From the sequence record PQ898602.1: a DNA stretch of 64,000 nt. One strand, given 5' to 3'. The notes below the pieces were generated by a model. The model had not been told where the DNA came from, did not search any database, and saw only the letters and a program-made list of their open reading frames with translations. Position numbers and translations under genes: made by a program. Below are positions 1,617 through 56,998 of the stretch, in pieces (within the stretch, counting starts at the first letter, position 1; every line of letters starts with the position of its first letter).

Positions 1617-3785
1617 ATGCCCGTCAACAAAGAAATCAAAGGAAACCTTGCTCGTCTTCTTGCAACCGAAGATCTGGTTGTGGAACACAAGAACGTTGCA
1701 ACTGCATCCTTCAATGTTGACACTCGCGTCTTGATCCTCCCTCAGTGGGACAGGGCTTCCAATGAAGTCTATGACATGTTGGTGGGTCACGAAGTTGGTC
1801 ATGCACTCTACACTCCGAATCAAGATATTCCCAAATCCATTCCCCACCAGTTTGTGAACGTGGTTGAGGATGCTCGTATCGAGAAACTAATGAAACGTCG
1901 GTACGGAGGTTTGAACAAAACTTTCTTCCGTGGATACACCGAACTACATGAAGAAGATTTCTTCCAAGTAAAAGACGACGATATCTCTACTTTCAATCTT
2001 GCTGATCGTGCTAACTTGTACTACAAGATTGGTAGTCTCATGGATATCCCTTTCTTCAATGTTGAAGAGAGTGTCCTGATCAAACGTATGGGTGAGACTG
2101 AGACTTTTGAGGATGTTCTCGAAGTTGCACGGGATCTCTATGAATACTGCAAACAACCCGAGAAGGAACAGGAAAAGGTTGCAACTAAACAAAACACCGA
2201 GTCCAATGCAGGTGGTGGAGAAGAACCTGATGACAAACCTGTAGATGAGACTTTGGATGAGTCCAAACCACAACAATCCCCTGTGGACAGCCACTCCCCC
2301 TCTGACAATGATGAGAATATTGATGAGGATCTACCCAGTGATCTTGGTGGAGAGACTGATGGAGAGGAACCTGAGGTTCGCACAGCAGATAATCTTGAGG
2401 ATTCGATTCGTGATCTGATTCAATCCATGGATCAACAGGAGAATATGTATCTGGAGATTCCTGAGTTGAACATGAAGACTGTCATTGCAGACAACAAGGA
2501 AGTTCATGATTACATTGATAATTGGTGGGAAGTTACCGAACGACGTATCGAAGACTATACTCACGAACAAATCTTTGGTGAGGTTGATAATGAGTTTCGT
2601 AAGTTCAAACGGGACGCACAGAAAGAAGTCAACTACATGGTAAAAGAGTTTGAGTGTCGCAAGTCTGCCGATGCATATGCTCGTGCAACTAGTAGTAGTA
2701 CTGGTACTCTTGACTGCACTAAACTTCATACCTACAAGTACAACGAAGATCTCTTCAAAAAAGTCACTACGATTAACGATGGTAAGAACCACGGATTGAT
2801 TTTCATTCTTGACTGGTCTGGTTCTATGAGTCGTGTCATGAATGACACCATCAAACAACTCTATAATCTCATCTGGTTCTGCAAGAAAGTTGCGATCCCG
2901 TTTGATGTATATGCGTTCACGAATGAATGGCTTGCGAATGATTACAACGAGTATGGTCAGTTCATTACTCTTTCCAGTCATTACGAGAAGAAACATGGAC
3001 TCCTGAGTATTCCAGATAATTTTTCATTGATGAACCTGTTCACCAGTAAGACTAATGTCAAAGTTCTGGAACAACAGATGATCAACATCTGGCGGATCTC
3101 TAAGGAGTTTGGGTATAACTATCGTCAAATGCCCATGTATACCCATCCTTGTCGTCTCAGTCTCTCTGGCACTCCTCTGAACGAGACTCTGGTTGCATTG
3201 CATCAGATCATTCCCCAGTTCCAGAAACAAAACAAGGTGCAGAAGGTTCAGTGTGTTGTGTTGACCGATGGTGAAGCTTGCCCTCTGAAGTTCCACAAAG
3301 AGTTTGTTGGTCGTGCAAAGTTCAATCCAGAAGAGGTGTATATCGGACTGAACAACATTTACCCTGGTACCTGTCTACTTCGTGATCGTAAACTTGGTAT
3401 GACCTATAAGTTTGATTATGACTTCCATTCATTCACTGATGTTCTCATCCACCATCTCCGTGATAAGTTCCCTAGTGTGAACTTCATTGGTATGCGTGTT
3501 CTTGAATCCCGTGATGCAAACTCTTTCATGCGTCGTTACTATCAGTGGGACAAGGATCTTTCTAAGTTGCAAACTTCTTGGAAGAAGAACAAGTCTTTTG
3601 TGATTCTCAACTCTGGATATCATGCCTACTTTGCACTCTCTGGTACGGATCTTTCCAAGGATATTGAGTTTGAAGTGAAAGAAGATGCAACCAAGACTCA
3701 AATCAAGTCTGCATTTTTCAAGTCTCTCAAAGGTAAGAAGATGAATAAGAAGATTCTGGGTGAGTTCATTGAGTTGGTTGCCTGA
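1617..3785 (+). CDS. CobT-like protein: N-terminal HExxH metallopeptidase-like domain plus C-terminal VWA domain
   Basis: HEVGH, NVVEDARIE, acidic linker, MIDAS DWSGSM, GTPLNE, VLTDGE; ATG at 1617 after aaggaag RBS. Confidence 0.8.
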   Translation: MPVNKEIKGNLARLLATEDLVVEHKNVATASFNVDTRVLILPQWDRASNEVYDMLVGHEVGHALYTPNQDIPKSIPHQFVNVVEDARIEKLMKRRYGGLNKTFFRGYTELHEEDFFQVKDDDISTFNLADRANLYYKIGSLMDIPFFNVEESVLIKRMGETETFEDVLEVARDLYEYCKQPEKEQEKVATKQNTESNAGGGEEPDDKPVDETLDESKPQQSPVDSHSPSDNDENIDEDLPSDLGGETDGEEPEVRTADNLEDSIRDLIQSMDQQENMYLEIPELNMKTVIADNKEVHDYIDNWWEVTERRIEDYTHEQIFGEVDNEFRKFKRDAQKEVNYMVKEFECRKSADAYARATSSSTGTLDCTKLHTYKYNEDLFKKVTTINDGKNHGLIFILDWSGSMSRVMNDTIKQLYNLIWFCKKVAIPFDVYAFTNEWLANDYNEYGQFITLSSHYEKKHGLLSIPDNFSLMNLFTSKTNVKVLEQQMINIWRISKEFGYNYRQMPMYTHPCRLSLSGTPLNETLVALHQIIPQFQKQNKVQKVQCVVLTDGEACPLKFHKEFVGRAKFNPEEVYIGLNNIYPGTCLLRDRKLGMTYKFDYDFHSFTDVLIHHLRDKFPSVNFIGMRVLESRDANSFMRRYYQWDKDLSKLQTSWKKNKSFVILNSGYHAYFALSGTDLSKDIEFEVKEDATKTQIKSAFFKSLKGKKMNKKILGEFIELVA

Positions 3786-3814
3786 TAAATATTGAGTAGC
3801 CGTTAGAACTCACC

Positions 3815-4021
3815 ATGGGAAGACTTAAGGATCTATTGGGTGGTGGTGCGCCTGCTCCCGCTGCACCTACCCCTCCAGCACCAGTTGCTGCACCAACTCC
3901 AGAAGTAGAAGCTGTTGCACCTCCTGCACCAGAAGGTGTTGTAGACATCGAAGTACCTGCGACACCAGTACCTAAAATTGTCATGGATGCTGCAGGAAAC
4001 ATCACACTCGTAGAGGAATGA
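3815..4021 (+). CDS. Pro/Ala-rich small late protein
   Basis: ORF downstream of TAAATA (3786-3791). Confidence 0.65.
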   Translation: MGRLKDLLGGGAPAPAAPTPPAPVAAPTPEVEAVAPPAPEGVVDIEVPATPVPKIVMDAAGNITLVEE

Positions 4022-4022
4022 T

Positions 4023-4472
4023 TTGATGAACGAACAGGAAACTTACGAATATCTTGTTGATTATCTTGTAGAGAATGGTTTTGCAGATCGTGAAAACGCA
4101 GACAAAATCATTCTTCACATGAGTGAAGAGTGGTATTCTGAAATCATTGAAGCCTCATGTGGTTCCTCTCCAAAAAGATATAAGGGAGGAAGTGCAGCAA
4201 AACCAGGACCCGATAAAAATCGTGTCAAACCCATGGGTGAGGAGACTGAAGATTCTCTGAGAGATCGCCGCATGGAACGTGGTGGTGTTGGTGGTAACCA
4301 ACGTTATGATCGTGCTCCAAAGGCACCCAATACCAAGAAGTTTGGTACTGGTAAGACCATGGCTCAAAAAGAGATGGAAAAGAAATATGGTAAAGGCAAG
4401 TCTGCCATGGACATTGTGAGAGCAGATATCACTGCCAAGTATGGTAAAGGCGCCATCATGGATAAAAAATAG
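4023..4472 (+). CDS. Hypothetical late protein with YLxxxGFA...MSExW..EIIE leader; putative internal head protein
   Basis: Leader homologous to N-terminus of 52749 ORF; basic Gly/Lys-rich C-terminal part. Confidence 0.7.
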   Translation: MMNEQETYEYLVDYLVENGFADRENADKIILHMSEEWYSEIIEASCGSSPKRYKGGSAAKPGPDKNRVKPMGEETEDSLRDRRMERGGVGGNQRYDRAPKAPNTKKFGTGKTMAQKEMEKKYGKGKSAMDIVRADITAKYGKGAIMDKK

Positions 4473-25799: not shown

Positions 25800-25843
25800 T
25801 ATAATAAATAACTAAAGGTTAAGGATCCCTGACTGAATAGGTA

Positions 25844-27136
25844 ATGAAAAGTTTCAGCAAGTTCTTCTCGGAAGCCAGAGAAACCAATGCGTCTGCAGAA
25901 GCCAAGAAACTTGGTTTAAAAGGTGATGGTCACGGAGGATGGTATAATAAACAGGGAGAGTTTGTCGCCAAAACAGAAGGCGGTGAACTCGTATTTTATG
26001 GAAAAGATAACAAACCAGGTGAGAAGGATGAACCTCATTCCTCTACACCTACTGGTCAAGCACAGGCTGCTGGAACAGAAGTAGGTGAGAGACCACAAGT
26101 AAATCCACAAGCATCCAGAGAAACTCCTGCACAGACAAGAGCGAAAGGAAATAAAGTAGTTGTCAATCCTGACGAAGAGGAAGAAGTAGTTGATGCACCA
26201 GAAGGTGAAGAGACTGAACTTGCACCTGGTGTTGTTGTAGTCTTCGGTAGATTCAATCCACCTACAATCGGTCACAAGAAACTTCTTGATAAGGCTGCTG
26301 CAGTTGCAAGAAAGAAAGGATTTGAACTGAGAATTTATCCTTCTCGTTCTCAGGATGCGAAGAAGAATCCTCTGACACCTGATATGAAGATCTCATACAT
26401 GCGTCAGATGTTCCCTGATTACATCGACAATATTATTGACGACAAGGGATCGAAGACTATCTTCAATGTACTAACTGGTGCAAACGAAGAGGGTCATACA
26501 AACATGACCATTATGGTTGGTGGTGACAGACTTAGTGAGTTCCAAGGTCTTGCACATAAGTACAACGGAGACCTTTATCAGTATGATGATCTTCAGGTAA
26601 TCTCTGCAGGTGATAGAGATCCTGATTCTGATGATGTTTCTGGAATGTCTGCATCGAAACTGCGTCTTGCTGCAGCAGAAGGAGATTTCAAAAAGTTTGC
26701 GAAGGGTGTACCCGACACTCTGAAGAACATGGAGAAGATGGAACTCTACAATGTTATTCGTAGATCGATGAACATTAGTGAAGAGACTGAAGTATGGGAA
26801 GTTGCACCTAAACTTGATGAAGAGGGAATGCGTGATGCATATCTAGTTGATGGTGTTTTTGCAGTTGGTGATATGGTAGAGAACGTTAATACTGGTCTGG
26901 TTGGTGAAGTAACTCGTAGAGGAACGAACTACATCATTGCAGTAACTGAAGCGGGTATGATGTTCAAGTCTTGGTTGAGAGATATCACAGAATTTAAGTA
27001 CTATGAAGTCGGTACTGATGCACAGAGAATTCATGCACAATCGATTACACCAGGTCAAGAAGTAAAAAGTTATACTGGTGTAAAGGTTCCTTCGATTTAC
27101 GACAGATTTAAGGCGGCTCTGAAAAAGAATAAATAA
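25844..27136 (+). CDS. HIGH-family nucleotidyltransferase (cytidylyltransferase/NMNAT-like) with capsid-targeting-like N-terminus
   Basis: MKSFSKFFSE leader; FGRFNPPTIGH, KNPL, VGGDR, SGMSASKLR; TAAATA at 25805. Confidence 0.75.
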   Translation: MKSFSKFFSEARETNASAEAKKLGLKGDGHGGWYNKQGEFVAKTEGGELVFYGKDNKPGEKDEPHSSTPTGQAQAAGTEVGERPQVNPQASRETPAQTRAKGNKVVVNPDEEEEVVDAPEGEETELAPGVVVVFGRFNPPTIGHKKLLDKAAAVARKKGFELRIYPSRSQDAKKNPLTPDMKISYMRQMFPDYIDNIIDDKGSKTIFNVLTGANEEGHTNMTIMVGGDRLSEFQGLAHKYNGDLYQYDDLQVISAGDRDPDSDDVSGMSASKLRLAAAEGDFKKFAKGVPDTLKNMEKMELYNVIRRSMNISEETEVWEVAPKLDEEGMRDAYLVDGVFAVGDMVENVNTGLVGEVTRRGTNYIIAVTEAGMMFKSWLRDITEFKYYEVGTDAQRIHAQSITPGQEVKSYTGVKVPSIYDRFKAALKKNK

Positions 27137-27164: not shown

Positions 27165-29612
27165 ATGTCTAGTTGGGAAAAATTCTCGAGCGAAATTGTA
27201 GAGGGTAAGAAAAAGCCTGCGTTAGATCCTGTTGGAAAAGAGGATGCTGACATTAATAATGATGGCAAAGAGGATGAGACCGATTCGTATCTAAGAAATC
27301 GCAGAAAGATTAGATCCAGAATCATTAGGAAAGAAGACTATGAAAACATCGAAGAAAAAGCCGTCTCAAAAGCCCAACAAAGATTCTTCGGGATGGTTAG
27401 AGCGGCTCAAAAGGGGGAAATGGAAGACCCCTCGCCTGAGGTTTCCAAAGCTGCAGCCTCCATGTCCAAGTCCGACGTAAAGGACTTTGCGAAGACAAAA
27501 CACGATAAACTACCAGAGAAGAAAGAAACAAAGGAGGAAACTTCTCTGGTAGGTGATATTGTAGAAAATCTTAGAGCACAGAGACTTGCAAGACAGGCTC
27601 AGAGACAAATTGCCCAAGATAAACAGGCTAGAAGAAAAACTGCCCGTCAAGGTCAAGACATGATTAATGATTTGGTTAGAGGACCAAATCCATCTAGAGG
27701 TAAATCTAAGAGAGTTGAAGTAAAGGCACCTGCAAATGTAAAAGGTGGTGCTAAGAAATCTTCTGACGAACCAGATCTGGATACTGTATCAGGAAGAGCA
27801 GAAGAACGTCGTAGAGCCTCTAAAACATCTGCAGAACTGCGTAGACAGGAAGACAGAACTAAAAGATCTGGATTAGCTGCTCAACTCCGAGGAGAAAGAA
27901 CAAGAAAGAAAGAAGCAGAGACCGCTGCTGCAGAACGTCGTGCGGGTCGTGATGCTGCCGCTAGAGAGAATGAAGTAAAGAGAGCTAAAGAACTTAAGAG
28001 TGCTAAAATTGATGCTAAGTCTAAACAGGACTCTGCATTTATGGATACACTGAAGAAGGAGGTCGGTGATGGTCTTGATAGAGCTGGTTCTAGAGCTGCT
28101 GTCAAGAAAGATGATACTGGTGGACAGGCACTTAGGAATCTCGAAGTTGGTGGTGATTTAATTGGTGGTCTCGCAAAGGGTCTTGTTGGTGGTGCTATGG
28201 CCAAACGTAAGGCCAAAAAAGACAGATTGGATGATCTCAAGAAACGACGTGAGGTTGATAAGGCAGGTCGTGCTGCGGGCAAACGTTTTGATATGGGTAA
28301 AAAAGCTGAAGCGGATGCGAAAGCAGACATGGAAAAGGATAAGGATGATAACCTTAAAAAATTCCTAAACCAAAAACCACCCAAATCAGTCACTGATCCT
28401 TATAAGGATGGTAAAGGTCGTTCGGATGTTGTCAAAGCTGGTGGTATTGGTGCTCAAGGTTCTGTAAGATCCAAAGGTGGATCTATGGGTGCTGATGGCC
28501 CTAAGGGTACTGCAATTCCTGGAACTACACCTAAACCAGCATTAGCTCCATCTAAACCAAATACACCTCCTGTAAGTGGTGGCGCGAGAAACCTTCTTTC
28601 TCCTGCTCAAGCTATGTCCAAACCAAAGAAAAAATTCTCTTCTAGAGGAGAAGCACTCAGAAAGAATCCGAGTATGAGAGCTAAAGTAGCAAGAGAGTTG
28701 GGTATGGGTAGTGCTAAGAAAGAAAAACCAAAAGGTTTTAAAGAAGGATTCTCTAATTGGAGAGTTGAGCTCAACGAGGGTTTCTTCTTACAAGAGGTTG
28801 AGGATGTTGAGAACAATGGTCTCCACTCCAACATTAAAAAACTTGTTGACATCTCTAAGAAGAAAAACAAGATTGAGATCAATCCTGCACTAGGTGAAGG
28901 TGCGCTTCCTGTAAAACCCATCGTTGGTAGTTTTGCACAAGGTGAAGCGGGAAAAGGTGATTCCAACAGAACCATGGGTGATGTTGCGAAACGTAGAATC
29001 AGAAGAAAACTAGTTGACTGGGCATCCCAGAAAGCTGGTGAGAAAGCTGAGGATATCGTTAAGAACATCCTTGATAAAAAGAAGGAAGGTGAAGAAGTTA
29101 AAGAGGGGTGGTCGGACAAGTATAAAAAGTCTATTGATTGCGATAACCCCAAAGGGTTTAGTCAGAAAGCACATTGTGCAGGTAAGAAGAAAGAAGTCAA
29201 GGAAGCATTTAAAGATGGTGAGATGAAACCCCAACTCAAAAAGAAGAAGGGTAACATCCAAGTAGTTGATACTGGTAACACTTTAAAGAAGTCTGTTGAC
29301 AATCAGATCAATACCGATCCTGACCTAACCTTAATCAAGAAAAAGTTGAAAGAAGATTGGCAAAAAGTCAATCGCAAGGACAAGACAGATGGTCTGAGTC
29401 AGAAAGCAGTTGATGCGTATCGTAAAGAGAACCCAGGTTCAAAGTTACAAACTGCAGTAACTGAAAAGAAACCAACTGGTAAGAGAGCAGATCGTCGAAA
29501 GTCCTTCTGCCGTCGCATGAAGGGGATGAAAGCAAAACTGACATCCAAGAAAACTTCAAGAGATCCTGATTCCAGAATCAACAAAGCTCTTCGTCGTTGG
29601 AATTGCAACTGA
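27165..29612 (+). CDS. Large modular basic late protein; putative internal-head polyprotein
   Basis: TAAATA at 27130; modules bounded by [ILV]-x-E; includes Cys-containing C-terminal modules. Confidence 0.75.
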   Translation: MSSWEKFSSEIVEGKKKPALDPVGKEDADINNDGKEDETDSYLRNRRKIRSRIIRKEDYENIEEKAVSKAQQRFFGMVRAAQKGEMEDPSPEVSKAAASMSKSDVKDFAKTKHDKLPEKKETKEETSLVGDIVENLRAQRLARQAQRQIAQDKQARRKTARQGQDMINDLVRGPNPSRGKSKRVEVKAPANVKGGAKKSSDEPDLDTVSGRAEERRRASKTSAELRRQEDRTKRSGLAAQLRGERTRKKEAETAAAERRAGRDAAARENEVKRAKELKSAKIDAKSKQDSAFMDTLKKEVGDGLDRAGSRAAVKKDDTGGQALRNLEVGGDLIGGLAKGLVGGAMAKRKAKKDRLDDLKKRREVDKAGRAAGKRFDMGKKAEADAKADMEKDKDDNLKKFLNQKPPKSVTDPYKDGKGRSDVVKAGGIGAQGSVRSKGGSMGADGPKGTAIPGTTPKPALAPSKPNTPPVSGGARNLLSPAQAMSKPKKKFSSRGEALRKNPSMRAKVARELGMGSAKKEKPKGFKEGFSNWRVELNEGFFLQEVEDVENNGLHSNIKKLVDISKKKNKIEINPALGEGALPVKPIVGSFAQGEAGKGDSNRTMGDVAKRRIRRKLVDWASQKAGEKAEDIVKNILDKKKEGEEVKEGWSDKYKKSIDCDNPKGFSQKAHCAGKKKEVKEAFKDGEMKPQLKKKKGNIQVVDTGNTLKKSVDNQINTDPDLTLIKKKLKEDWQKVNRKDKTDGLSQKAVDAYRKENPGSKLQTAVTEKKPTGKRADRRKSFCRRMKGMKAKLTSKKTSRDPDSRINKALRRWNCN

Positions 29613-34094: not shown

Positions 34095-34466
34095 ATGAGA
34101 TTTGATGAGTTGAACGAAAACAATTATATAATGTTTGCTATAAAACATTATGACAATCCTCATGCAGTCACACAAGATGACTTCTATGAGGATATGAAAA
34201 GGTTTAAGTGGATCAAACGTCTACTTAAAAGATATAAGTCAACAGGTGTCCTCAAAACACACCTGTTGATAAATCACTTTATCATTTTGTATAATGTATT
34301 TGGTGAAGCTGCGACTCCTTTGTTGTTCTATAAGATCGACAAGGACTTGTGGCCTGTTATTAAAAGTTTTATAATCTACCTGGAAAGACTTCCAGAATAC
34401 CCAATCAGCAGTCTGCACACCATTCCTGTAGACGAAGAGTGTTTAGATACGATTAAACAAGTATGA
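34095..34466 (+). CDS. Conserved T4-like hypothetical protein
   Basis: FDELNENNYIMFAIKHYDNP...LLINHFIILYNVFG. Confidence 0.8.
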   Translation: MRFDELNENNYIMFAIKHYDNPHAVTQDDFYEDMKRFKWIKRLLKRYKSTGVLKTHLLINHFIILYNVFGEAATPLLFYKIDKDLWPVIKSFIIYLERLPEYPISSLHTIPVDEECLDTIKQV

Positions 34467-34681
34467 ATGACCCCAGACTTGAAAATTCGATTAGGTTGAT
34501 CCGCAACCTTATGGAGGATGCTCCCGTCAATTCTGTGGGTGGTGGTCACATTGCTGGATTGGGTGTAGGTGATCAGGGAGAACCACCTGGTATTCCTGCA
34601 AGTAAGAAGAAGAGAAAGAAGAAAAGATATATTTACCAGAAAGGGCTTCGTAAATGGTGGAACGCACTAATCGAGAAGTAA
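34463..34681 (+). CDS. Small basic hypothetical protein with LME-DAP.NS motif
   Basis: ATGA coupling; Lys-rich tail. Confidence 0.65.
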   Translation: MNDPRLENSIRLIRNLMEDAPVNSVGGGHIAGLGVGDQGEPPGIPASKKKRKKKRYIYQKGLRKWWNALIEK

Positions 34682-47453: not shown

Positions 47454-49718
47454 TTATCGGTCAGTGAACGTTATATTCAATCCATTAGTGAATGTAAGTC
47501 CATTTGGATTTTTAATCTGTAGGTTTGGTTTCTGTGGTTCAGATGGAGAACCCGTAGGTGCATCCCAAATGACTACGATATCTGTACCATAGCTATTTGT
47601 TCCATATGCATCTCTCCAGTTGTCATCAGTTGCAGACCAAGATGTTTGATCTCCGCCCATATAAAACTTCGCTGGATTCTGAGGACCACATTGATTTTTC
47701 AACCAAGTCTTAATATCACTCCACAACCATGCTCTATTGTATTGAAGTTTGGTAGTGATCCATCCTGCTGCAGTTGGACATGCAGAACTAGTACCACCAA
47801 AATCCACATCATATGCAGTAAGTGTTAGTCCAGTATATGTTTCTGGATGTTGATAAGTTAGAGCACTATTTCTTCCATCAGCTGTAAGGGTATCATCTGC
47901 TGCGGCATAACAATCAATACTAGAACCTCTATCAGAGTAATTAACAATTTTTTCTTTATAATCTGTTGGTCTGTCGCCAGAATTGCTGCCACCTGATCCA
48001 CTACTTTGAATTTGATCATCCAATGCGCCAATATTGATTGCAGGGTAAATGGTATTCGGACCTGTACCTGCTGCACCAATTGCTTGTGGCCAACCTCTTC
48101 TATTCAGTGTATTATAAGCAGTATAACCAAATTCTGTATGTGTACATTCTGTTAGTGCAACACCAGGAGTACCATTCCAGTAATTATTGTAATCAAGATC
48201 TCCTGGATTTACTTGAGTTTGGTTTGAATTGCCTGCAGCAACAACAAAAATAACACCTGCATCTACTGCTTCTTTTCCTGCAACAACATAAGAAGATTCT
48301 CTAGGGTGTTCACCCTTCATTCTTCCTGAGTCTCCATAATTACCCACATCAACGAAGAAGGCTGGTTCTGCTGTATAGCTTGTAGCACTAGTACCTCCAT
48401 CAATATCTGCTGGTCTGTACCAATAATAGTCACCTTCGCTAGAATGTGAACTGCTCCTGTATCCCCAGCTGTGACTTGATAAGGTAGGATTTCTATCTCC
48501 ATTTTGTTGTCTGCCGTTTGTTTCGGATACCCAACTATAATTTGGCTTATAAAGGTGGAATAATTTTAAGACATCAAAACCTGGACCTGCAATACCTGCA
48601 TCACTGCCGCCATACAGATTCATTACCCATTTGTTGCAGTTGTAAGCAACACCATAATTTTTTCCAAATACTTGACCTGCACATTGTGTTCCATGATTAG
48701 TTCCATTTGTTGCTTTCGCAGTATTAGAACCATTGGATGTAGCTCTTGTATATGCAGTACTAATTCCACTCACAGTACCAATAGTAGAGAATCCTACAGA
48801 TCTTTGTGATGAATCAGACCACCAAGATCTTGCTGCAGATTCTAGAGGAACTGTTGTTCCATCCCAACGAGTAGTTAGGAGTGATGGGTTTGCATTGAAG
48901 AAGTCTGGATCGATATAGTATGGACCATCGACAATAATATCCAAAACGCCACAACAATTTGCACCTTGAGTAGAAATACCTGCCCAAGTTAATGCGTTTC
49001 CAGTTTTCCAATTAGTAGGATTGGTATTGCCGCAATCAACAAACTCTGGGTGTGCAATCCAGAATCCATCATCGCAGACAACTGCATCGACTCCAGTACC
49101 ATCACCAAGTTGTTCTACATCTCTGACAAAGACATGGTGATCGGAATCACTTATTCCAGTATCTGTTGCATCCCAGGGATTTTCTCTCTGTGTGTGTCTA
49201 TAAATCTGATATCCAGTTCTATTATAATCAGTTGCTCCCGCACCAGTTTGTGGTGGTCGCGAGTCTGTGGGACCAGTATTCCAGGCACGATAATTAATTA
49301 CATTTTTTTCAAATCTTTTCTTATATTGAGGAGTTGCGTGTAGTTCACCTGGTTCTGGAGCATAAGTGCCAGGATAAGACTGATAATCAATGTGACAATA
49401 TTCTACTCTTGGATGATCTTTGAGTGCAGCTGCTTCCTCATCATCGAGGAGATAAGTTCCTCTCGTATCACTATGACTTTTTTCGTCTGCACACTCAATT
49501 GAAGATGGTGGGATATTATCTTCTAAAGTCCCATCTTGCATGAGAACTTCATGGACATGTTCCCAATCTTCTTTTGTATAACACCCAATGGTATATAATT
49601 TTTTCCCAGTTCCACCTGGGACAGAATCAAGACTGTCTCGGTCCAGTCTATTAGGTCCAGTCTCGTAAACTACCTGTTCTTCGGTAGGTTCAAGACCGGC
49701 TCTATCTGTCTCGATCAT
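47454..49718 (-). CDS. Subtilisin-like (S8) serine protease with propeptide
   Basis: VVCDDG (Asp), NHGTQCAG (His), VAAGNSN (oxyanion Asn), FGGTSSACP (Ser). Confidence 0.85.
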   Translation of the reverse strand: MIETDRAGLEPTEEQVVYETGPNRLDRDSLDSVPGGTGKKLYTIGCYTKEDWEHVHEVLMQDGTLEDNIPPSSIECADEKSHSDTRGTYLLDDEEAAALKDHPRVEYCHIDYQSYPGTYAPEPGELHATPQYKKRFEKNVINYRAWNTGPTDSRPPQTGAGATDYNRTGYQIYRHTQRENPWDATDTGISDSDHHVFVRDVEQLGDGTGVDAVVCDDGFWIAHPEFVDCGNTNPTNWKTGNALTWAGISTQGANCCGVLDIIVDGPYYIDPDFFNANPSLLTTRWDGTTVPLESAARSWWSDSSQRSVGFSTIGTVSGISTAYTRATSNGSNTAKATNGTNHGTQCAGQVFGKNYGVAYNCNKWVMNLYGGSDAGIAGPGFDVLKLFHLYKPNYSWVSETNGRQQNGDRNPTLSSHSWGYRSSSHSSEGDYYWYRPADIDGGTSATSYTAEPAFFVDVGNYGDSGRMKGEHPRESSYVVAGKEAVDAGVIFVVAAGNSNQTQVNPGDLDYNNYWNGTPGVALTECTHTEFGYTAYNTLNRRGWPQAIGAAGTGPNTIYPAINIGALDDQIQSSGSGGSNSGDRPTDYKEKIVNYSDRGSSIDCYAAADDTLTADGRNSALTYQHPETYTGLTLTAYDVDFGGTSSACPTAAGWITTKLQYNRAWLWSDIKTWLKNQCGPQNPAKFYMGGDQTSWSATDDNWRDAYGTNSYGTDIVVIWDAPTGSPSEPQKPNLQIKNPNGLTFTNGLNITFTDR

Positions 49719-52633
49719 CAGATTCCTCCTGTATAGTTAATGTTCCACTTAGATGTAATTACACCAGACTGACCCGATTCTGGGGTAAATCTGATATCAA
49801 CGTTACTTCCAACGACTGCTGCGTCGATAGACAAGATTTGATTTGGTGAGTACATAATTGCATACTCTTGGGAATATGCAGTGGTACCATCATGCATAAC
49901 GAGAAGTTTCTGAACTTGTCTTTGAGTTCCAAGTCCACAAGTGAAGGTATACTCTGCACTTGCATGGTCACTTAGTGCAAAACTATGTACGGTATATGCA
50001 ACACCTGCAGATGCAGTAGTTGTATTAACACCAGTTTGACCTTGTGCAGTGACTGTTACAACTCCTGCAGAAATGTCAGAACATGTGAGACCAATACCGA
50101 AGTTGATCGTTCCTGCAGTTCCTCTACTTACTCCACTATCAGAAACAGTTACACCTGCACCTGCTCCAGTAACACCAGTAAGTCCACCACCATCACCAGA
50201 GAATGAAGTCGCAGTTAGAACACCAGTGACAACTGCACCAGAAGTGTTTGCTTGGACTCTTACCGTATCTCCATCATCCTTAATACTTGTTCCTGCACCA
50301 ACACTGATTCCCGTAAGTGCGGAACCATCGATTGCAGGGAGAGCACCTGTTAAGTTTGCAGCAGGTAAACTTGTAAGGTTTGCGCCACTTCCATGGAAAG
50401 TACCAGAGAAGTTTGACGCATATAGGTAGTTAGTTCCTGGGTTGAATCTAAGTCCACCATTATCAACCATCAACTTGCTGTAGGAGTTACCTGCACCAGA
50501 GTTGTCCATCATGATGACATTGTAATTTACATTGTCATCAATAGATTCTTCAATTCTAATTCCACCATTGAAATTAGATGCAGTAACGATACCAGAACCA
50601 CCAACTTCAATACCACCTGCGGTCATGGTTACTCCGAACCCTGAACCATTTGCACCAACGTTAAGTTGACCTCTGAAGTTTGATGCGGTTCCGTTGCCGA
50701 ATACGTCAATACCATATTGGTAATAGACACCAGCTGTAGAAGTAAAGTAAACGAGGTTCTGATCGAAGTAAACGTATTGACCAGAAGGAGCTCTCAAGGA
50801 TAGAGTACCACTGGTACTCTCAACAACGTTTGTACTGAACTTGAGGTCCGCAACAGAAGCAACACCAGAAACTTGAATGTCACCTTCGACTGATAGATCT
50901 ACAGTTGGTCGGGTAGAACCAATACCAACTTTTCTTCCTGTGGTGAAGATACCTGCGAGTGCTCCATCAGAGACTGCCCAGGTTCCACCTGCACCAGGTA
51001 GAGATCCACTTGCACCTTGTAGACCCTGGAAACCTGCACCAGTTTCACCTTGAATACCTTGGAAACCATCTTGACCAAGAATGCCCTGTGTGCCTTGTAC
51101 GCCCTGCAGACCTTGTAGACCCTGAGTACCTTGTGCAGCAATATCAGATGCGTCTGCACCTTGAATACCTAAGATACCTTGAGTACCTTGCGCTGCTTGT
51201 GTACCTTGCAGACCCTGGAGGCCTTGGGTTCCTTGAACGCCCTGAAGTCCTTGCAAACCTTGAGTGCCTTGGACACCTTGGGTTCCTTGAACGCCTTGTG
51301 TTCCCTGAGCTCCCTGAATGCCCTGGAGTCCTTGTACGCCCTGAATGCCCTGGAGTCCTTGTACGCCCTGAATGCCCTGTGCTCCAGTTGTTCCCTGAAG
51401 ACCAGTTGCACCCTGTGGACCTTTGATCAGACCAACATCCGACCAAGTAGTTGCTCCAAATGTCCAGAGACGACCAGTGTCATCTGCGATAACACCATTA
51501 CCTGCAACAGGTGGATACCAAACGTAACCAGTATCGTCTGCGGTCAACGTTGTAGCACCAACACCTTGTGTATTGGATGGAATGTTACCGACAATGGTTA
51601 CCGAGGTTCCGTCTTCACCTTCAGTACCCTGTACGCCCTGAGGACCCTGTAGTCCCTGTACGCCTTGAACACCCTGAACGCCTTGGGTACCCTGGATACC
51701 TTGGGTTCCTTGCGCTGCCTGGGTGCCTTGGAGACCTTGTACGCCTTGAGTACCTTGGAATCCGTATGGTCCTTGAGTACCTTGGGATGCTTGTGTGCCC
51801 TGTAGACCTTGAACGCCTTGGAATCCGTATGGACCTTGAGTTCCATCTGTACCTTGAGAACCAGTTACAAGTTCTCCATTTGACCAGAACTGGGATGCAG
51901 TAATAATGCCAGTGGTATTAACGTAGGAATCAGTTGTAAGAGTCTTTGCTACATCTGCTAGGGAGGATACACCTGCGAGAGGAGTGTAGTATGCGAGTCT
52001 TGCTGCATCTACGATAGTTGTGATTCCAGTAACTGTTGCGATACCACCTGCAACTGTTACACCAAGATTTTCATTAAAGTCGATCTTGGAGAATTCACCG
52101 AGGATTACGTTATCATTTCTTAATTCGATACTTCCGATGCCAGCTGCGACTGTTCCACCGCCACTGACTACTGAAGTTGTTAGGGAAATAAGGACACGAC
52201 CTGCACCATCGGGATCACCTAATGTGAGTCCGTTACCGAAGTTGAGTTCTTTTGCAATACCTTTTCTAACCGAGTCGTCTAGAATCTCAACACCAGAGTT
52301 GGTTGCAACTACGTTTTCGAGTTGACTACCATCACCGAAGAATTGTGTTGCGGTAATGACACCTGTTGCGGTGATGTTCCTGACTTCGAGGTGTTCTGCG
52401 GTTGCTACTCCAGCAACGACTGCACCTGTTGTGTTGATAATCGGATTCCCAGTCAGGTTCTCTGCGACTGTTGAAATACCCGCACTATCTACATAACTTT
52501 CTAGATCATCTCCATCCCCAAAGGTATCGTAGAGTTCTTGAAAGTTACTATTAATTTTACCCATTGCAGAACGCAATGAATCACCAGTACCATCATTAGC
52601 GCTACTGCCTGTATTGATACCCAGTCTAGACAT
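49718..52633 (-). CDS. Tail-fibre-like protein with collagen-like G-X-Q repeats
   Basis: N-terminal NDGTGDSLR anchor; long QGxQG tracts; C-terminal LLVMHDGTTAY domain. Confidence 0.8.
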   Translation of the reverse strand: MSRLGINTGSSANDGTGDSLRSAMGKINSNFQELYDTFGDGDDLESYVDSAGISTVAENLTGNPIINTTGAVVAGVATAEHLEVRNITATGVITATQFFGDGSQLENVVATNSGVEILDDSVRKGIAKELNFGNGLTLGDPDGAGRVLISLTTSVVSGGGTVAAGIGSIELRNDNVILGEFSKIDFNENLGVTVAGGIATVTGITTIVDAARLAYYTPLAGVSSLADVAKTLTTDSYVNTTGIITASQFWSNGELVTGSQGTDGTQGPYGFQGVQGLQGTQASQGTQGPYGFQGTQGVQGLQGTQAAQGTQGIQGTQGVQGVQGVQGLQGPQGVQGTEGEDGTSVTIVGNIPSNTQGVGATTLTADDTGYVWYPPVAGNGVIADDTGRLWTFGATTWSDVGLIKGPQGATGLQGTTGAQGIQGVQGLQGIQGVQGLQGIQGAQGTQGVQGTQGVQGTQGLQGLQGVQGTQGLQGLQGTQAAQGTQGILGIQGADASDIAAQGTQGLQGLQGVQGTQGILGQDGFQGIQGETGAGFQGLQGASGSLPGAGGTWAVSDGALAGIFTTGRKVGIGSTRPTVDLSVEGDIQVSGVASVADLKFSTNVVESTSGTLSLRAPSGQYVYFDQNLVYFTSTAGVYYQYGIDVFGNGTASNFRGQLNVGANGSGFGVTMTAGGIEVGGSGIVTASNFNGGIRIEESIDDNVNYNVIMMDNSGAGNSYSKLMVDNGGLRFNPGTNYLYASNFSGTFHGSGANLTSLPAANLTGALPAIDGSALTGISVGAGTSIKDDGDTVRVQANTSGAVVTGVLTATSFSGDGGGLTGVTGAGAGVTVSDSGVSRGTAGTINFGIGLTCSDISAGVVTVTAQGQTGVNTTTASAGVAYTVHSFALSDHASAEYTFTCGLGTQRQVQKLLVMHDGTTAYSQEYAIMYSPNQILSIDAAVVGSNVDIRFTPESGQSGVITSKWNINYTGGI
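51020..51860 (-). repeat. Collagen-like 9-bp-period repeats incl. exact 27-bp tandem (51312-51379, about 2.5 copies)
   Basis: ccctgaatgccctggagtccttgtacg repeated. Confidence 0.9.
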
Positions 52634-52663: not shown

Positions 52664-52721
52664 TATTTATCGTTTCCCAGAATCGGTTATTTATTATATC
52701 AGATGTTGGCAATAATAAATA
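52664..52721. promoter_or_regulatory. Divergent late promoters
   Basis: Minus TAAATA at 52664-52669 and 52688-52693; plus TAAATA at 52716-52721. Confidence 0.65.
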
Positions 52722-52748: not shown

Positions 52749-54341
52749 ATGGATAAGTTCGACATCATTAAATCCTATTTACTAGACGAAGGTTTCGCGG
52801 AAACTGAGGAAGCTGCCATCGGTATGATGGTATCTATGAGTGAGTCTTGGAAAGAAGAAATTCTTGAAGGTTATAAGGGTAAGCATGGTCAGTCTGACAA
52901 AGAATATGCAGACTCCCGTTCCCAGGGTGGTAAGATGGTGTCTGGTGACTCCAAGATGAGTGGTGCAGAATACACCCATGGTCGTAGAGTTAAGGCAGCA
53001 AACCCTGGTATGCAACCTGATGTAGGTGGTAAGACCAAGCCCAAGTCTCAGGGTAAGATGGATGCTGGAACTCGCAATGAGTTGATGTATCGTAAGGCAA
53101 ATCTGAAGAAAGAAGAACTTGAGTTAGACGAGAATCGTCGCGCAGCTCGTTCTGCTGGTGGTTATAAGGACGACTCCAAGAAACAGACTGATCCTTCTAA
53201 GGATGGATTTACTGGTATCTCTGGTAGTATTGCAGATATCATGCGTCAGAACAAAGAGATTGAAGCAAAAAATAAGAAGATGAAGAAGGAAGAGGTTGAA
53301 GTAGAAGAAGGATATAAGGAGATTGATCAAGCCAAGAAGAACAGAATGTTCCGTCGTGCTGGTAATCTTTCCCGTGATGCAATCAGTACTCCCATTCCTC
53401 CAGAGAAACGCCAGGAAGCACACAAAAAGTCTGGTAAGATTGTCAAACAACTGAACAAGTTGAACCAGGAAGAAGTAGTTCTTGAGAAGAAGGAAGAAGT
53501 AGATCCAGAGAAAGCCAAAAAGGAAAAGATTAAGAAAACAATTTCTCATATGGGTAAAGGAAACCCACACTATGATGCCAAGAGTGCTGGAATCTCTCGT
53601 GTAAAAGATTTTAAGTTTACTCCTGTTAAAGAAGAAGTAGTTACTGAGAAGAAGAAAGACGATACATATCTTGAAACAGATATGAAGAAACGTCAGGCAA
53701 ACAACGAAAAGGCTCGTAAGGAAATGGAAAAGATCCCTGGTCAGAAGAACCCACACTTTGAAGAAGTACAACAAGTTGATGAGGCACTACCTCTATTAGC
53801 AGCAGTTCCTGCAATGCTCGGTAAAGCCGCTGCAGTTGGTGCTAAAGTTGGTGCAGTTGGTGCAAAAGCAGGCGCTGCCGCTGCAAAGGTAGGTGCGAAG
53901 TCGGGTATGAAGGCTAAACTGAAACTCAAGATGAAGGATATGGCAAAAGATGCCATTAAGAACAAAGCGCAAGACATGGCATCCAACGTTAAAGATAATG
54001 CCGCAAGTACAGCTAGTGATCTGAATCCACTCGATTCTCTAAAGAATTCTCACGAACCACAAGGTGAACAGATCAATGAGATCTCCGCAGAAACTGCACT
54101 CTCGGCTTCCAAGGCAAGAGACAAACAGGCAATGATGCTCAGAGGTCCAGAGAACACTGAGAAGAGAGCCGAACTGAGAGCAAAGGCATCTCAGAACTAT
54201 GACAGAGCAGTTAAGAAGCGTAAGGCAGGTTACGTCAAGAACACTGCATCTGCACAAGGTCCTGTTAGAAAAATGACTGCTGAGAGTATTAGTGACATCG
54301 CTTCTCTTCGTGCAGAGATGCTAAACGAGGAAAAAGAGTGA
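52749..54341 (+). CDS. Modular late protein; putative protease-processed internal-head polyprotein
   Basis: Eight EE-x(0-3)-[ILV]-x-E type boundaries separating basic modules. Confidence 0.75.
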   Translation: MDKFDIIKSYLLDEGFAETEEAAIGMMVSMSESWKEEILEGYKGKHGQSDKEYADSRSQGGKMVSGDSKMSGAEYTHGRRVKAANPGMQPDVGGKTKPKSQGKMDAGTRNELMYRKANLKKEELELDENRRAARSAGGYKDDSKKQTDPSKDGFTGISGSIADIMRQNKEIEAKNKKMKKEEVEVEEGYKEIDQAKKNRMFRRAGNLSRDAISTPIPPEKRQEAHKKSGKIVKQLNKLNQEEVVLEKKEEVDPEKAKKEKIKKTISHMGKGNPHYDAKSAGISRVKDFKFTPVKEEVVTEKKKDDTYLETDMKKRQANNEKARKEMEKIPGQKNPHFEEVQQVDEALPLLAAVPAMLGKAAAVGAKVGAVGAKAGAAAAKVGAKSGMKAKLKLKMKDMAKDAIKNKAQDMASNVKDNAASTASDLNPLDSLKNSHEPQGEQINEISAETALSASKARDKQAMMLRGPENTEKRAELRAKASQNYDRAVKKRKAGYVKNTASAQGPVRKMTAESISDIASLRAEMLNEEKE

Positions 54342-54475
54342 AGACGTTCAAACACTTCTCTGAAGGAACCAAGGAAGAGAACAAACAAAAAAGTTTGTTC
54401 GCGAGATATAAAGATCTCCAAAATCCTAAAGATCCAAAAACTACAGAAAAACTTCTCAAAAAAGGATCCGCTTGA
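54338..54475 (+). CDS. 45-aa basic protein with T4 capsid-targeting-like N-terminus (MKTFKHFSE)
   Basis: GTGA coupling to upstream stop; terminator follows. Confidence 0.55.
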   Translation: MKTFKHFSEGTKEENKQKSLFARYKDLQNPKDPKTTEKLLKKGSA

Positions 54476-54500
54476 CGGGTCCTCTTTTTTTGACTAAAAT
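54463..54500 (+). promoter_or_regulatory. Overlapping terminator and sigma70 promoter
   Basis: aggatccg-cttga-cgggtcct-ctttttt; TTGACG-N17-TAAAAT. Confidence 0.65.
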
Positions 54501-54548
54501 TACTCTGTGGAGTTTCAGAAATAAATATAGCTACTTTTAGAGAGCTAT

Positions 54549-54992
54549 ATGATAGATTATGAGAACCCTTGGATCTACAAGGGTCGTGCATTTTTATCAG
54601 AAGATATTGGAAATAATTACGGATTCGTATATAAGATTACGAATATCTTGAATGGTAGAGAGTATATTGGAAGAAAGTATTTCGTTCAGAAAAGAAAACC
54701 AAAAGGTGGTAAACGCCGAGTCACTTCTGAGTCTGATTGGAAGAAGTATTATGGGTCTTGCCCTGAGTTAAAAGACGACATTAAAAAGTTCGGAAAACAT
54801 AACTTTACCCGTGAAATTCTCAGTATACATAGTACACTGGGAAAAGTGAATTACGAGGAGACCCGTCAGTTGTTCGTACAGGGAGTCCTGACCGAATCGC
54901 TTGACAACGGGGTTCCGAGGTTCTACAATTCTAATGTTCTCGGCCGTTACTACAGGAAGGACTACTTTCATGGAACAAGATCTGATGAATGA
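54549..54992 (+). CDS. GIY-YIG family protein
   Basis: YGFVYKITN...YIGRK, W..YYGS, F.REIL..., YEE. Confidence 0.75.
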   Translation: MIDYENPWIYKGRAFLSEDIGNNYGFVYKITNILNGREYIGRKYFVQKRKPKGGKRRVTSESDWKKYYGSCPELKDDIKKFGKHNFTREILSIHSTLGKVNYEETRQLFVQGVLTESLDNGVPRFYNSNVLGRYYRKDYFHGTRSDE

Positions 54993-55110
54993 GACAGACT
55001 ATCTCAAGGACCAAATCATTGATCGCATCCATGACCTAGTGGCTATGGGTGACTATCTGAATGCGACTGCTGTTTATGAGGAGTTCAAAGAAAACTTCCA
55101 AGAACAATAG
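54967..55110 (+). CDS. Small hypothetical protein
   Basis: Open frame; start 54967 or 54982. Confidence 0.5.
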   Translation, partial: FMEQDLMNETDYLKDQIIDRIHDLVAMGDYLNATAVYEEFKENFQEQ

Positions 55111-55140
55111 TCATATATACTCATAACTACTTCAAGAAGA

Positions 55141-55554
55141 ATGAAACTTCGTAACCTGATCAAAGTTGTTGAAAAAGTTATTGCACCAGAACCTCTTGAA
55201 GAAATCAAAGAGGAAGATATTGAATGTGCGATTGATGAACAAGTAGTTCCCTGTGAAGAGTTGCAGGAACCAGAACCCCCTTATACTGGTTATCCTGCTC
55301 CTGCTTATCTTGTGGATGATCCTTGGTTTGGACCTGCACCCACTCTGACTGAAAAACAGATGGATTATATGCAGATGGAAACTGAAGTCAAGATGCAAGA
55401 AGAGAAGGAACGTGAAGAATCTGGTAGTGAACCAGAGAATATTCACCAACTCATGTATGAAATGGCTACAAAAAATGCTCCAACTACTATTCAGTTGAAT
55501 CCGATTGGTGGTTCGGAAATGTTCCAAGGAGGATCAGAAAATGTCCACCGATGA
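55141..55554 (+). CDS. Acidic Pro-rich hypothetical protein
   Basis: DDPWFGPAP; IHQLMYEMAT. Confidence 0.65.
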   Translation: MKLRNLIKVVEKVIAPEPLEEIKEEDIECAIDEQVVPCEELQEPEPPYTGYPAPAYLVDDPWFGPAPTLTEKQMDYMQMETEVKMQEEKEREESGSEPENIHQLMYEMATKNAPTTIQLNPIGGSEMFQGGSENVHR

Positions 55555-55759
55555 TTGGCGTTATAGTGATGAACGTATGGATGTACGAACTCAAGGATTG
55601 AATATCCTTCTTAATAAGTTTGGACGTGAAATATGTTCAGATGGATCGCCAAGGTATTCCAATCAGAGTATTTACGAATGCGTTCATGATTGGGTTTCTC
55701 AGGGTAATATTAGAACTGATGGTATCGTTGCATACTACAAAGCATATTACGCTAACTAA
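55541..55759 (+). CDS. Conserved hypothetical protein
   Basis: MSTDDWRYSDERM...YECVHDWVSQG. Confidence 0.65.
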   Translation: MSTDDWRYSDERMDVRTQGLNILLNKFGREICSDGSPRYSNQSIYECVHDWVSQGNIRTDGIVAYYKAYYAN

Positions 55760-55768
55760 TTTATTCTA

Positions 55769-56353
55769 ATGATCAAACGAACTTTAACTGCTCTCGCACT
55801 AGTTTTTGGTAGTGTTGCATGTGCAGGTGATGGTGATGACATGATGCTTAAAGTGGAGGGAACTCCGCTGGAAGTAGTTCCTCATGTCCAAGCATCTTGG
55901 AAGTGTGAAGATTGCACTCCTGAAGAGAAATATGTTCTGGAACAACTTCAAGAACATACTCGAATTACTGATCGCAATGCTCTTGCAACGATCATGGGTA
56001 ACATCAAACAGGAATCTAAGTTCATTCCTGATATCTGTGAAGGTGGTGCTCGCGTAACGTATGACAACTGCCATATTGGTGGTTATGGTCTGATTCAATG
56101 GACCTCAGTAAATCGTTACGATAATCTTGGTAGGTTCTGTCAGAAGTATGGATGTGACCCTAGTACACTAGAAGGTCAGACTCGTTATATGATTAACGAA
56201 AACGTTTTCCAACGTTATCTTCCAGAGTTCGAGGGAAGTGGTAAGACCATCCATCAGTACATGGTTCCTGCATATTACTGGTTGGGTTGGGGTATCAAAG
56301 GTAATCGCGAAATCTACGCATACGTTTATGCCAACAAACTCAAGTTTGGGTGA
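55769..56353 (+). CDS. Phage tail lysozyme-like (lysozyme_2 family) muramidase with signal peptide
   Basis: ATIMGNIKQES, GYGLIQWT..R. Confidence 0.7.
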   Translation: MIKRTLTALALVFGSVACAGDGDDMMLKVEGTPLEVVPHVQASWKCEDCTPEEKYVLEQLQEHTRITDRNALATIMGNIKQESKFIPDICEGGARVTYDNCHIGGYGLIQWTSVNRYDNLGRFCQKYGCDPSTLEGQTRYMINENVFQRYLPEFEGSGKTIHQYMVPAYYWLGWGIKGNREIYAYVYANKLKFG

Positions 56354-56370
56354 TTATACACCAGGGGGTC

Positions 56371-56400
56371 TTGACGTGACCCCCACCAATATACTAAGAT
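56371..56400 (+). promoter_or_regulatory. Sigma70-type promoter in hairpin loop upstream of tRNA array
   Basis: ggggtc-TTGACG-t-gacccc; TAAGAT at 56395-56400 (N18). Confidence 0.5.
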
Positions 56401-56527
56401 TGATTAGTGAATTGGAAGGTTCTTACCAACTCCTCAAGTATATGGGGTTTTCTGAAGACCAAGAGACCATTGACAAACTCAAAAGTAAGTACTATACTAT
56501 GTACTTCAAGGAAAAGAAAAAGGTCGA

Positions 56528-56599
56528 GGGTCATTAGTTAAGTGGATATAACCTCCGCCTTCTAAGCGGATGTCCCAGGTTCGAGTCCTGGATGACCTG
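56528..56599 (+). tRNA. tRNA-Arg(TCT)
   Basis: GGGTCAT/ATGACCT acceptor, loop CTTCTAA, GGTTCGAGTCC. Confidence 0.93.
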
Positions 56600-56604
56600 C
56601 CTAA

Positions 56605-56676
56605 TCCTCTTTAGCTCAGCGGTAGAGCGAACGACTGTTAATCGTTTGGTCCCTGGTTCGATCCCAGGAAGGGGAG
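56605..56676 (+). tRNA. tRNA-Asn(GTT)
   Basis: TCCTCTT acceptor, loop CTGTTAA, GGTTCGATCC. Confidence 0.95.
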
Positions 56677-56796
56677 TAGCGGACTTGGCATACGTCCGTA
56701 CTCACGTCTCCGAGAGAAAAAAGAATCGGAAATCCAACCCATGTGAGTGAGAGGTGGGATCCCTCTTGGTGCTACCGTTGCTGACGAGTGGCGGTT
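56676..56796 (+). ncRNA. Unidentified structured RNA between tRNA-Asn and tRNA-Leu
   Basis: Five to six helices visible by eye in 120 nt with no ORF role. Confidence 0.55.
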
Positions 56797-56803
56797 ATTA
56801 TTA

Positions 56804-56885
56804 GTCGATGTGGCGGAATTGGTAGACGCGCTGGTTTTAGGTACCAGTTCTTTCGAGAGTGAAGGTTCAAGTCCTTTCATCGACA
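56804..56885 (+). tRNA. tRNA-Leu(TAG)
   Basis: GTCGATG acceptor, GGTAGAC D-loop, loop TTTAGGT, long variable arm. Confidence 0.93.
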
Positions 56886-56886
56886 C

Positions 56887-56915
56887 TTGACAATCATATT
56901 TTTCTCTGGTATGGT
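56887..56915 (+). promoter_or_regulatory. Sigma70-type promoter inside tRNA array
   Basis: TTGACA-N17-TATGGT. Confidence 0.6.
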
Positions 56916-56923
56916 TGTCTTAT

Positions 56924-56998
56924 GCGGGTTTAGTTCAGTGGTAGAACGTCAGCCTTCCAAGCTGAATGTCATCGGTTCAAATCCGATAATCCGCTCCA
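56924..56998 (+). tRNA. tRNA-Gly(TCC)
   Basis: GCGGGTT acceptor, loop CTTCCAA, encoded CCA. Confidence 0.93.

Follow-up and report, generated by a model that had tools for sequence, protein, structure and literature searches.

An acidic three-helix domain shared by probably late, basic proteins of Synechococcus phage S-SCSM2R, and T4-type CTS-like N-termini in the same genome

Results

Two genes with a shared N-terminal segment

The window analyzed here is the whole stretch of 64,000 nucleotides at positions 124001-188000 of PQ898602.1, the 244 kb record of Synechococcus phage S-SCSM2R, a T4-like cyanomyovirus. The window sequence was identical to the record, and window positions, obtained as record position minus 124000, are used below unless stated otherwise. 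Two genes in the window, ORF141 and ORF205, begin with related segments. Their features are listed here together with ORF140, the small gene directly upstream of ORF141.

3815..4021, + strand: ORF140, 68 aa, Pro/Ala-rich, 4 nt from ORF141
4026..4472, + strand: ORF141 (SSCSM2R_141), 148 aa; predicted acidic three-helix domain, then basic tail
4041..4151, + strand: predicted three-helix domain of ORF141 (residues 6-42), from HMM (E 6e-19) and alignments; ends I-I-E, then Ala
4152..4469, + strand: ORF141 basic tail, pI 10.2; matches phrog_26015 and phrog_1418
52749..54341, + strand: ORF205 (SSCSM2R_205), 530 aa; predicted N-terminal three-helix domain and a long basic, mostly disordered mosaic tail
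52755..52868, + strand: predicted three-helix domain of ORF205 (residues 3-40), from HMM (E 2e-19) and AlphaFold2; ends I-L-E, then Gly

The annotated start of ORF141 is the ATG at 4026; the TTG at 4023 is merely the start of the longest open reading frame. ORF140 is probably co-transcribed with ORF141, and its homologues were found in near-identical contigs only. The proposal that ORF140 is the lost N-terminal half of a split gene was rejected because it showed no homology to the N-termini of longer orthologues. The domain carries a net charge of -10 in ORF141 and -8 in ORF205 (pI about 4), and the tails are basic, with pI values of 10.2 and 9.7, respectively, and net charges of +14 to +29. 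Predicted order was low in ORF205 beyond the domain, and the ESM Atlas model had a pLDDT of 0.49.

Homology, fold and family size

Pairwise BLASTP of the N-terminal segments of ORF141 and ORF205 (about 40-45 residues) gave 36% identity with an E-value of 2e-6. We built a family HMM from 43 diverse members and searched it against every six-frame ORF in 238 kb of the S-SCSM2R genome. It matched just three, namely ORF205 (E 2e-19), ORF141 (E 6e-19) and ORF130 (E 6e-18). The next-best match had an E-value of 0.68. Chance or low-complexity similarity between the two proteins was ruled out by the BLASTP result and the HMM scan. The first-pass annotation had aligned the two segments and remarked that both end in I-x-E ahead of basic cargo, and on both points it was borne out: the segments are homologous, and they end IIE before A in ORF141 and ILE before G in ORF205, with the basic tails following.

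AlphaFold2, run on the family alignment, returned a three-helix bundle with a pLDDT of 92.7 (helices at residues 3-14, 20-29 and 32-41). In this model the segment forms an autonomous, acidic domain of three helices and ~40 residues. Profile searches of Pfam and NCBIfam found no family that matches the domain, Foldseek against the PDB found nothing significant (best E 3.9), and the matches in BFVD and ESM Atlas were uncharacterised cyanophage proteins alone. The domain is contained in PHROGs 3708, 22522 and 29315, and in phrog_3708 it is internal (profile positions 337-391 of 499). Both window proteins matched these three domain families as well as the tail families 1418 and 26015, every one of which is labelled 'unknown function'.

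The family extends far beyond this phage. One degenerate pattern recovered at least 453 confirmed domain loci in IMG/VR, and a profile search of 1.84 billion representative proteins gave 3,747 clusters at E <= 1e-3 and 2,672 at E <= 1e-10. The domain family is very large and has no named or curated model in Pfam-A or NCBIfam.

Position of the domain in its proteins

The shared segment had initially been read as a leader. This reading failed: most relatives carry the domain internally or C-terminally, in more than one copy, or as a gene of its own. It occupies residues 303-342 of 398 in S-SRM01 gp269, residues 81-118 of 200 in S-CRM01 g291 and residues 237-278 of 333 in a DSL-LC02 protein, and P-SSM2 PSSM2_140 (T4-GC136, 51 aa) is essentially all domain. 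When architectures were counted on the best 150 of the 3,747 representative clusters, only 9 of the 150 were domain-first, 33 had a copy at most 6 residues from the C-terminus, and 83 had two or three copies. The domain is a widespread movable module, most often placed within basic disordered phage proteins or at their end. ORF141 and ORF205 are members of a very large, unnamed mosaic, 'beads-on-a-string' protein family of T4-like cyanophages and related aquatic myoviruses.

A second element was found at the N-termini of these proteins. The motif M-(N/D)-S-x-(D/E)-(L/F)-R-x-L-x-E-A-Y-x-x-V-Y (N-motif) heads 101 of the best 150 clusters, beginning at residue 9 in 75 of the 101 and beyond residue 30 in only 2, and none of the 150 combines it with an N-terminal domain. 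The N-motif (LxEAYxxVY) was not found in S-SCSM2R. It was seen in IMG/VR loci L016-L087 and in proteins P0121-P0270, and it is a candidate addressing peptide.

In the conserved slot between the CobT-like and CobS/MoxR genes, ORF141 has orthologues as short as 138 aa and as long as about 450 aa. The orthologue in contig L047 has the N-motif, a linker of ~130 residues and then the domain, and the one in contig L012, otherwise near-identical downstream, has MNSEQ joined straight to the domain. Because ORF141 starts in a similar manner (MNEQE-TYEYL), the comparison of L012 with L047 suggests that it looks like an internal-deletion derivative of longer orthologues with the other N-terminal motif.

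The third HMM match in S-SCSM2R is a gene made up of the domain alone.

PQ898602.1 118957-119115 (L090:18957-19115), outside the window: ORF130, stand-alone domain, 52 aa, HMM E 6e-18; ends ..LIISE-stop

ORF130 follows the gp23 terminator directly and precedes gp3; no exact ATAAATA was found upstream of it. Stand-alone domain genes are also present in P-SSM2 and in several IMG/VR contigs, beside gp22, gp23, gp3 and uvsY.

These architectures bear on a proposal in which the domain itself is a position-independent element for prohead targeting or scaffold docking that would route basic cargo into the head and be clipped by gp21 at I-x-E. Such a role would be consistent with the stand-alone copy adjoining gp23, and also with the finding that, in the best 150 clusters, no protein is both domain-first and N-motif-first, as though either element could take the place of the other at the N-terminus. 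It is harder to square with the conservation of a cargo-less stand-alone copy in several phages (PSSM2_140, ORF130 and several IMG/VR loci), with the commonness of two or three copies per protein, and with the separate N-terminal motif that most family members already have. A complex prediction with cognate gp23, gp22 and the stand-alone domain of metagenomic contig L018 scored 0.00, which gives no answer either way.

The I-x-E ending of the domain

I-x-E terminates 50 of 69 distinct domain copies in IMG/VR loci and 136 of 185 copies (~74%) in the representative set, where A, G or S comes next in 73. S-SCSM2R encodes a homologue of gp21 (ORF127), and its gp23 has L-G-E followed by A at the expected propeptide boundary, with the L and the E invariant in 30 gp23 homologues. 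The ending of the domain thus resembles the substrates of the gp21 prohead protease, in which L/I-x-E is followed by a small residue, and gp21 cleavage at the domain I-x-E is plausible. However, the motif is also kept where the domain forms the extreme C-terminus of a protein (..QIIEG-stop, ..TIIE-stop). It therefore cannot be solely a cleavage site, and is at least partly structural, as a portion of helix 3. The earlier suggestion of a gp21-type boundary was accordingly upheld as far as the fit to the L/I-x-E logo and to the phage's own gp23 is concerned, and was weakened by the persistence of the motif at protein C-termini.

The ending speaks both for and against a targeting role of the domain. 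For it is that most copies end in I-x-E and then A, G or S, and against it that copies at the extreme C-terminus keep I-x-E-G-stop.

The cleavage-like motif at the junction of domain and tail, together with their opposite charges (-8 to -10 for the domain against +14 to +29 for the tails), could also indicate an intramolecular pro-domain or chaperone, which would mask a basic DNA-binding tail until proteolysis in the head and have no addressing role. Copies that stand alone or end a protein are followed by no tail that could be masked, and we regard this explanation as improbable.

Late-promoter-like motifs and gene neighbourhood

The ATAAATA cores ahead of the genes considered here are as follows.

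3785..3791, + strand: ATAAATA late-promoter-like core, 30 nt upstream of ORF140
25804..25810, + strand: ATAAATA late-promoter-like core, upstream of ORF175
27129..27135, + strand: ATAAATA late-promoter-like core, upstream of ORF176
52715..52721, + strand: ATAAATA late-promoter-like core, 34 nt upstream of ORF205

The window contains 15 occurrences of ATAAATA, 12 on the + strand (3785, 11641, 11736, 12495, 12599, 24612, 25804, 27129, 29612, 33545, 52715 and 54521) and three on the - strand (47451, 52664 and 52688), all of which are upstream of same-strand gene starts. Ten lie within about 55 nt of the start, and these close cases include ORF140/141, ORF174, ORF175, ORF176, ORF185, ORF202, ORF204, ORF205 and ORF207. 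The remaining five lie 99 to 246 nt upstream, before ORF155, ORF156 and ORF177. Upstream of ORF140/141, ORF175, ORF176 and ORF205 the distance was 28-40 nt, and in the structural module of the same genome ATAAATA was found at 28-40 nt before the neck, portal, ORF125, gp21 and gp22 genes, a positive control from within the genome for a late promoter of T4 type. The consensus for T4 late promoters is TATAAAT, as cited in PMC3037559. The ATAAATA sites in the window are spaced as before the head and neck genes and are probably late promoters, which makes it likely that ORF141 and ORF205 are expressed late.

Some further genes with these motifs were observed. ATAAATA also precedes the sHsp (ORF155), PetE (ORF202) and SegE-like (ORF207) genes. 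ORF204 (49718-52633, - strand, 971 aa), which is annotated 'FhaB', has two late-promoter-like motifs upstream, and its sequence includes long collagen-like G-x-Q-G-x-Q repeats; the product is probably a fibre protein and not a haemagglutinin. Outside the window, ORF125 and ORF126 (L090:15034-15554) are small genes between portal and gp21, one of them encoding a very acidic product. They stand where T4 has genes 67 and 68, and a late-promoter motif precedes them.

The recurrent neighbours of domain genes in other contigs, which come from T4-like cyanophage genomes, were CobT-like (18 loci), gp46, gp41 helicase, MazG, CobS/MoxR, gp45 and cytidyltransferase genes. ORF141-type genes were found within the replication module in 18 loci, flanked by the CobT-like and CobS/MoxR genes. 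This placement, along with the frequent neighbours gp46, gp41, MazG and gp45, would agree with the domain being a general interaction module of cytoplasmic phage proteins (for instance of a CobT-like/MoxR (CobS) pair or of a replication module) that has nothing to do with the capsid. The same could be said of the S-SCSM2R virion mass spectrometry, which is nearly free of unknown proteins. On the other hand, the late-promoter motifs are like those of head genes, the stand-alone copy follows gp23, modules of the ORF205 tail occur in virion proteins, and the internal-protein genes of T4 likewise lie outside its head cluster. We give the cytoplasmic alternative little credence.

Separately, the region at 52749-57331 holds ORF205 and ORF206, a SegE-like GIY-YIG endonuclease, a lysozyme-domain protein and then a cluster of five tRNAs, an order that loosely mirrors the ipI / tRNA / segB / e / ipIII / ipII neighbourhood of T4.

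Virion proteins and shared tail modules

Mass spectrometry of S-SCSM2R virions identified 23 proteins, only one of them of unknown function, and ORF175 is not named among them (PMC12801897). It follows that no more than one of the two, ORF141 or ORF205, can have been among the proteins detected. This proteome is shallow, and Lys/Arg-rich proteins yield poor tryptic peptides.

The tail of ORF205 has counterparts in other phages. Residues 188-242 match S-SM1 SSM1_191 (49% identity, E 1e-11), and residues 130-240 and 301-338 match Syn9 gp185 and gp186. In purified S-SM1 virions, SSM1_191 (T4-GC1454) was detected with 10 counts, SSM1_192 (T4-GC1455) with 7 and the adjacent SSM1_190 cytidyltransferase (T4-GC190) with 25 (PMC3037559 Table S8). 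The late-promoter motifs, together with this module common to an S-SM1 virion protein, suggest that ORF141 and ORF205 are head-internal proteins.

The three-helix domain was absent from those S-SM1 virion proteins and from the S-CREM2 virion proteins examined, and the S-CREM2 virion proteins near its cytidyltransferase had neither the domain nor the N-motif. Tail modules in common with virion proteins, and late-promoter motifs, would suit the proposal of prohead targeting by the domain itself, but virion proteins that do without the domain tell against it. Taking this with the architectures and the C-terminal I-x-E endings, we consider that proposal unlikely.

Homologues of the ORF141 and ORF205 tails were seen to be annotated 'cytidyltransferase' in S-H35, S-B64, RB11-B and Sf-CH5/8. 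ORF205 residues 185-247 match positions 478-542 of 556 in the phrog_764 profile, and the label on such tail-only homologues is probably spurious, derived from C-terminal tail modules of phrog_764 and not from an enzyme domain.

CTS-like N-termini

Several other genes of the window were examined for N-termini resembling the T4 capsid-targeting sequence (CTS).

25844..27136, + strand: ORF175, cytidyltransferase/NMNAT-like (T4-GC190 family), from homologue alignment; family seen in virions
25844-25873, + strand: putative CTS-like propeptide of ORF175, first ten codons, MKSFSKFFSE followed by A, from homologue conservation
27165..29612, + strand: ORF176, 815-aa Lys/Arg-rich mosaic protein, net charge +75; begins MSSWEKFSSEIVE, followed by G
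34463..34681, + strand: ORF187, 72 aa, contains LME followed by DAP; positional equivalent only of the S-CREM2 virion protein gp160
54338..54475, + strand: ORF206, 45 aa, GTG start overlapping the ORF205 stop; begins MKTFKHFSE, like T4 IPI

The CTS-like starts that the first-pass annotation had reported at 25844 and 54338 are present. ORF175 begins MKSFSKFFSE followed by ARET, and in all 120 listed of its 7,860 homologues the starts fit MK.[FL][TS].F[LF].E followed by ARET, with a family consensus of MKNFTQFLTE followed by ARET. F/L4, F7, L/F8, E10 and A11 are kept in 119-120 of the 120 listed homologues, so that positions 4, 7, 8 and 10 are all conserved. Genetic work on the T4 CTS showed that positions 4 and 7 (hydrophobic/aromatic) matter for targeting and positions 8 and 10 (L/I and E), before a small residue, for gp21 processing (PMC9026906). 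In the T4 record, IPIII and IPII begin MKTYQEFIAE, then Ala, and IPI begins MKTFKEFTS. The ORF175 family has the same kind of residues as the T4 CTS: positions 4 and 7 are aromatic, position 8 is aliphatic or aromatic, and position 10 is Glu. Members of the cytidyltransferase family have been detected in virions of S-SM1, S-SCSM1, S-CREM2 and S-CBWM1 (PMC3037559 Table S8, PMC9602691, PMC10665884), and a CTS on the ORF175 family would explain this repeated detection.

ORF206 agrees with T4 IPI (MKTFKHFSE and MKTFKEFTS) in 7 of the first 8 residues, as matches were counted. Its positional equivalents begin similarly, MLTFKQLSE in Syn9 gp186 and MLSFKELQE in the S-SM1 virion protein SSM1_192. A permissive CTS regular expression, applied to the six-frame ORFs of 238 kb, found only ORF175 and ORF176, in both cases at the true N-terminus. 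From these alignments the CTS-like N-termini of ORF175 and ORF206 are well supported as candidates, and ORF176 probably, or perhaps, begins with a CTS-like peptide too.

ORF176 has modules in common with S-PM2 p145/p146, with the N-terminal region of Syn9 gp185 and even with a Flavobacterium phage. By position it corresponds to the virion proteins that S-SM1 encodes downstream of its cytidyltransferase; its similarity to S-CREM2 gp160 was not significant. A 347-aa metagenomic phage protein (L064:1479-2519) begins MKSYQEFISE followed by AKK, in which 8 of 10 residues are identical to the T4 CTS, and then has a CWPGY..KKGT..FGK.YN.CVK module that is also found in the virion protein gp160 of S-CREM2.

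A further processing boundary had been proposed within ORF187, at LME before DAP. The string is present, and what speaks for it is position: S-CREM2 gp159 is a homologue of ORF186, the neighbour upstream, and ORF187 itself had no significant similarity to gp160. In the literature searched, no paper was found that links a CTS to cyanophage proteins, which is not proof of novelty.

Discussion

Comparison with known systems

The system most similar to the one described here, the T4 CTS and internal proteins, is already known; the domain family is undescribed. The N-termini of ORF175 and ORF206, and probably of ORF176, resemble the CTS of IPI, IPII and IPIII (MKSFSKFFSE before A in ORF175, MKTYQEFIAE before A in T4). 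The CTS is about 10 residues long (19 in IPI) and stands at the extreme N-terminus, starting with MK. ORF175 and ORF206 have such an element, whereas the three-helix domain, at ~40 residues, folded in the model, acidic and often duplicated, does not correspond to it. The domain has no sequence similarity to the CTS, and the sole likeness is the I-x-E ending before A or G.

In T4, IPI-III are basic and late-expressed, are packaged in the head and leave it with the DNA. The T4 internal and core proteins (IPI-III, gp67, gp68 and Alt) are like the cyanophage proteins in being basic and hypervariable, with late-looking genes outside the head cluster. They also share the proximity of a seg-type homing endonuclease, a lysozyme-domain gene and a tRNA cluster, and some relatives of the cyanophage proteins have been detected in virions. 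The cyanophage proteins differ in being much longer and in being largely disordered mosaics of short modules. No sequence homology to the T4 proteins was found, the comparison with the IPs being made on the first 39-40 residues of each IP only, and no match to an IP (IPI-III) family was found in Pfam, PHROG or NCBIfam.

Small docking elements are familiar from other capsids. The C-terminal helix-turn-helix coat-binding domain of the P22 scaffolding protein, which is basic, docks the scaffold to the shell interior, and encapsulin cargo-loading peptides dock cargo inside the shell; such elements may be at a terminus other than the N-terminus. The three-helix domain is comparable to them as a small helical element in functional analogy alone. 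It is acidic, unlike the P22 domain, and no match in fold or sequence was found.

A proposed late repertoire of internal proteins

We put a probability of roughly 0.6 on the reading that ORF141 and ORF205 belong to a late, basic, largely disordered repertoire of internal proteins, in which the domain is a movable acidic protein-binding module and the address tags are N-terminal. Under this reading, the ORF141 and ORF205 family would consist of late-expressed head-internal proteins, the cyanophage counterpart of the internal proteins of T4. The domain is shuffled among mosaic proteins, between basic disordered modules, and stands N-terminal, internal, C-terminal, in tandem or, like ORF130 beside gp23, alone. 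Its most likely function would be that of a protein-binding module within the prohead core, and the I-x-E ending before A or G could allow gp21 to split the acidic domain from the basic tail.

The address tags proper would be strictly N-terminal elements. One would be the T4-type CTS of ORF175, ORF206 and perhaps ORF176, and a second would be the family's own N-terminal LxEAYxxVY motif. ORF141 and ORF205 would have lost the part with the N-motif and hence happen to start with the domain.

In a broader version, T4-like aquatic phages would use at least three interchangeable head-addressing elements: the 10-residue CTS, the ~18-residue LxEAYxxVY helix and the folded three-helix domain. If this were true, the domain would attach to the prohead core wherever it stood in a protein, gp21 would set it free at I-x-E, and the three elements together would load shuffled basic disordered proteins, as well as enzymes such as the cytidyltransferase, into capsids. 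We think this version doubtful, and prefer the reading in which the address tags are confined to N-termini.

Implications for cyanophage heads

The domain family delineated here is unannotated and counts thousands of members. T4-like cyanophages have no recognisable homologues of the T4 internal proteins, gp67 or gp68. A conserved T4-type CTS on the NMNAT-like cytidyltransferase would provide a concrete loading mechanism for a virion enzyme. A second may be provided by the large mosaic family, in which N-terminal motifs and the movable acidic domain occur on basic, probably late proteins. The CTS, the N-motif and the domain are candidate tags for the loading of cargo into cyanophage capsids.
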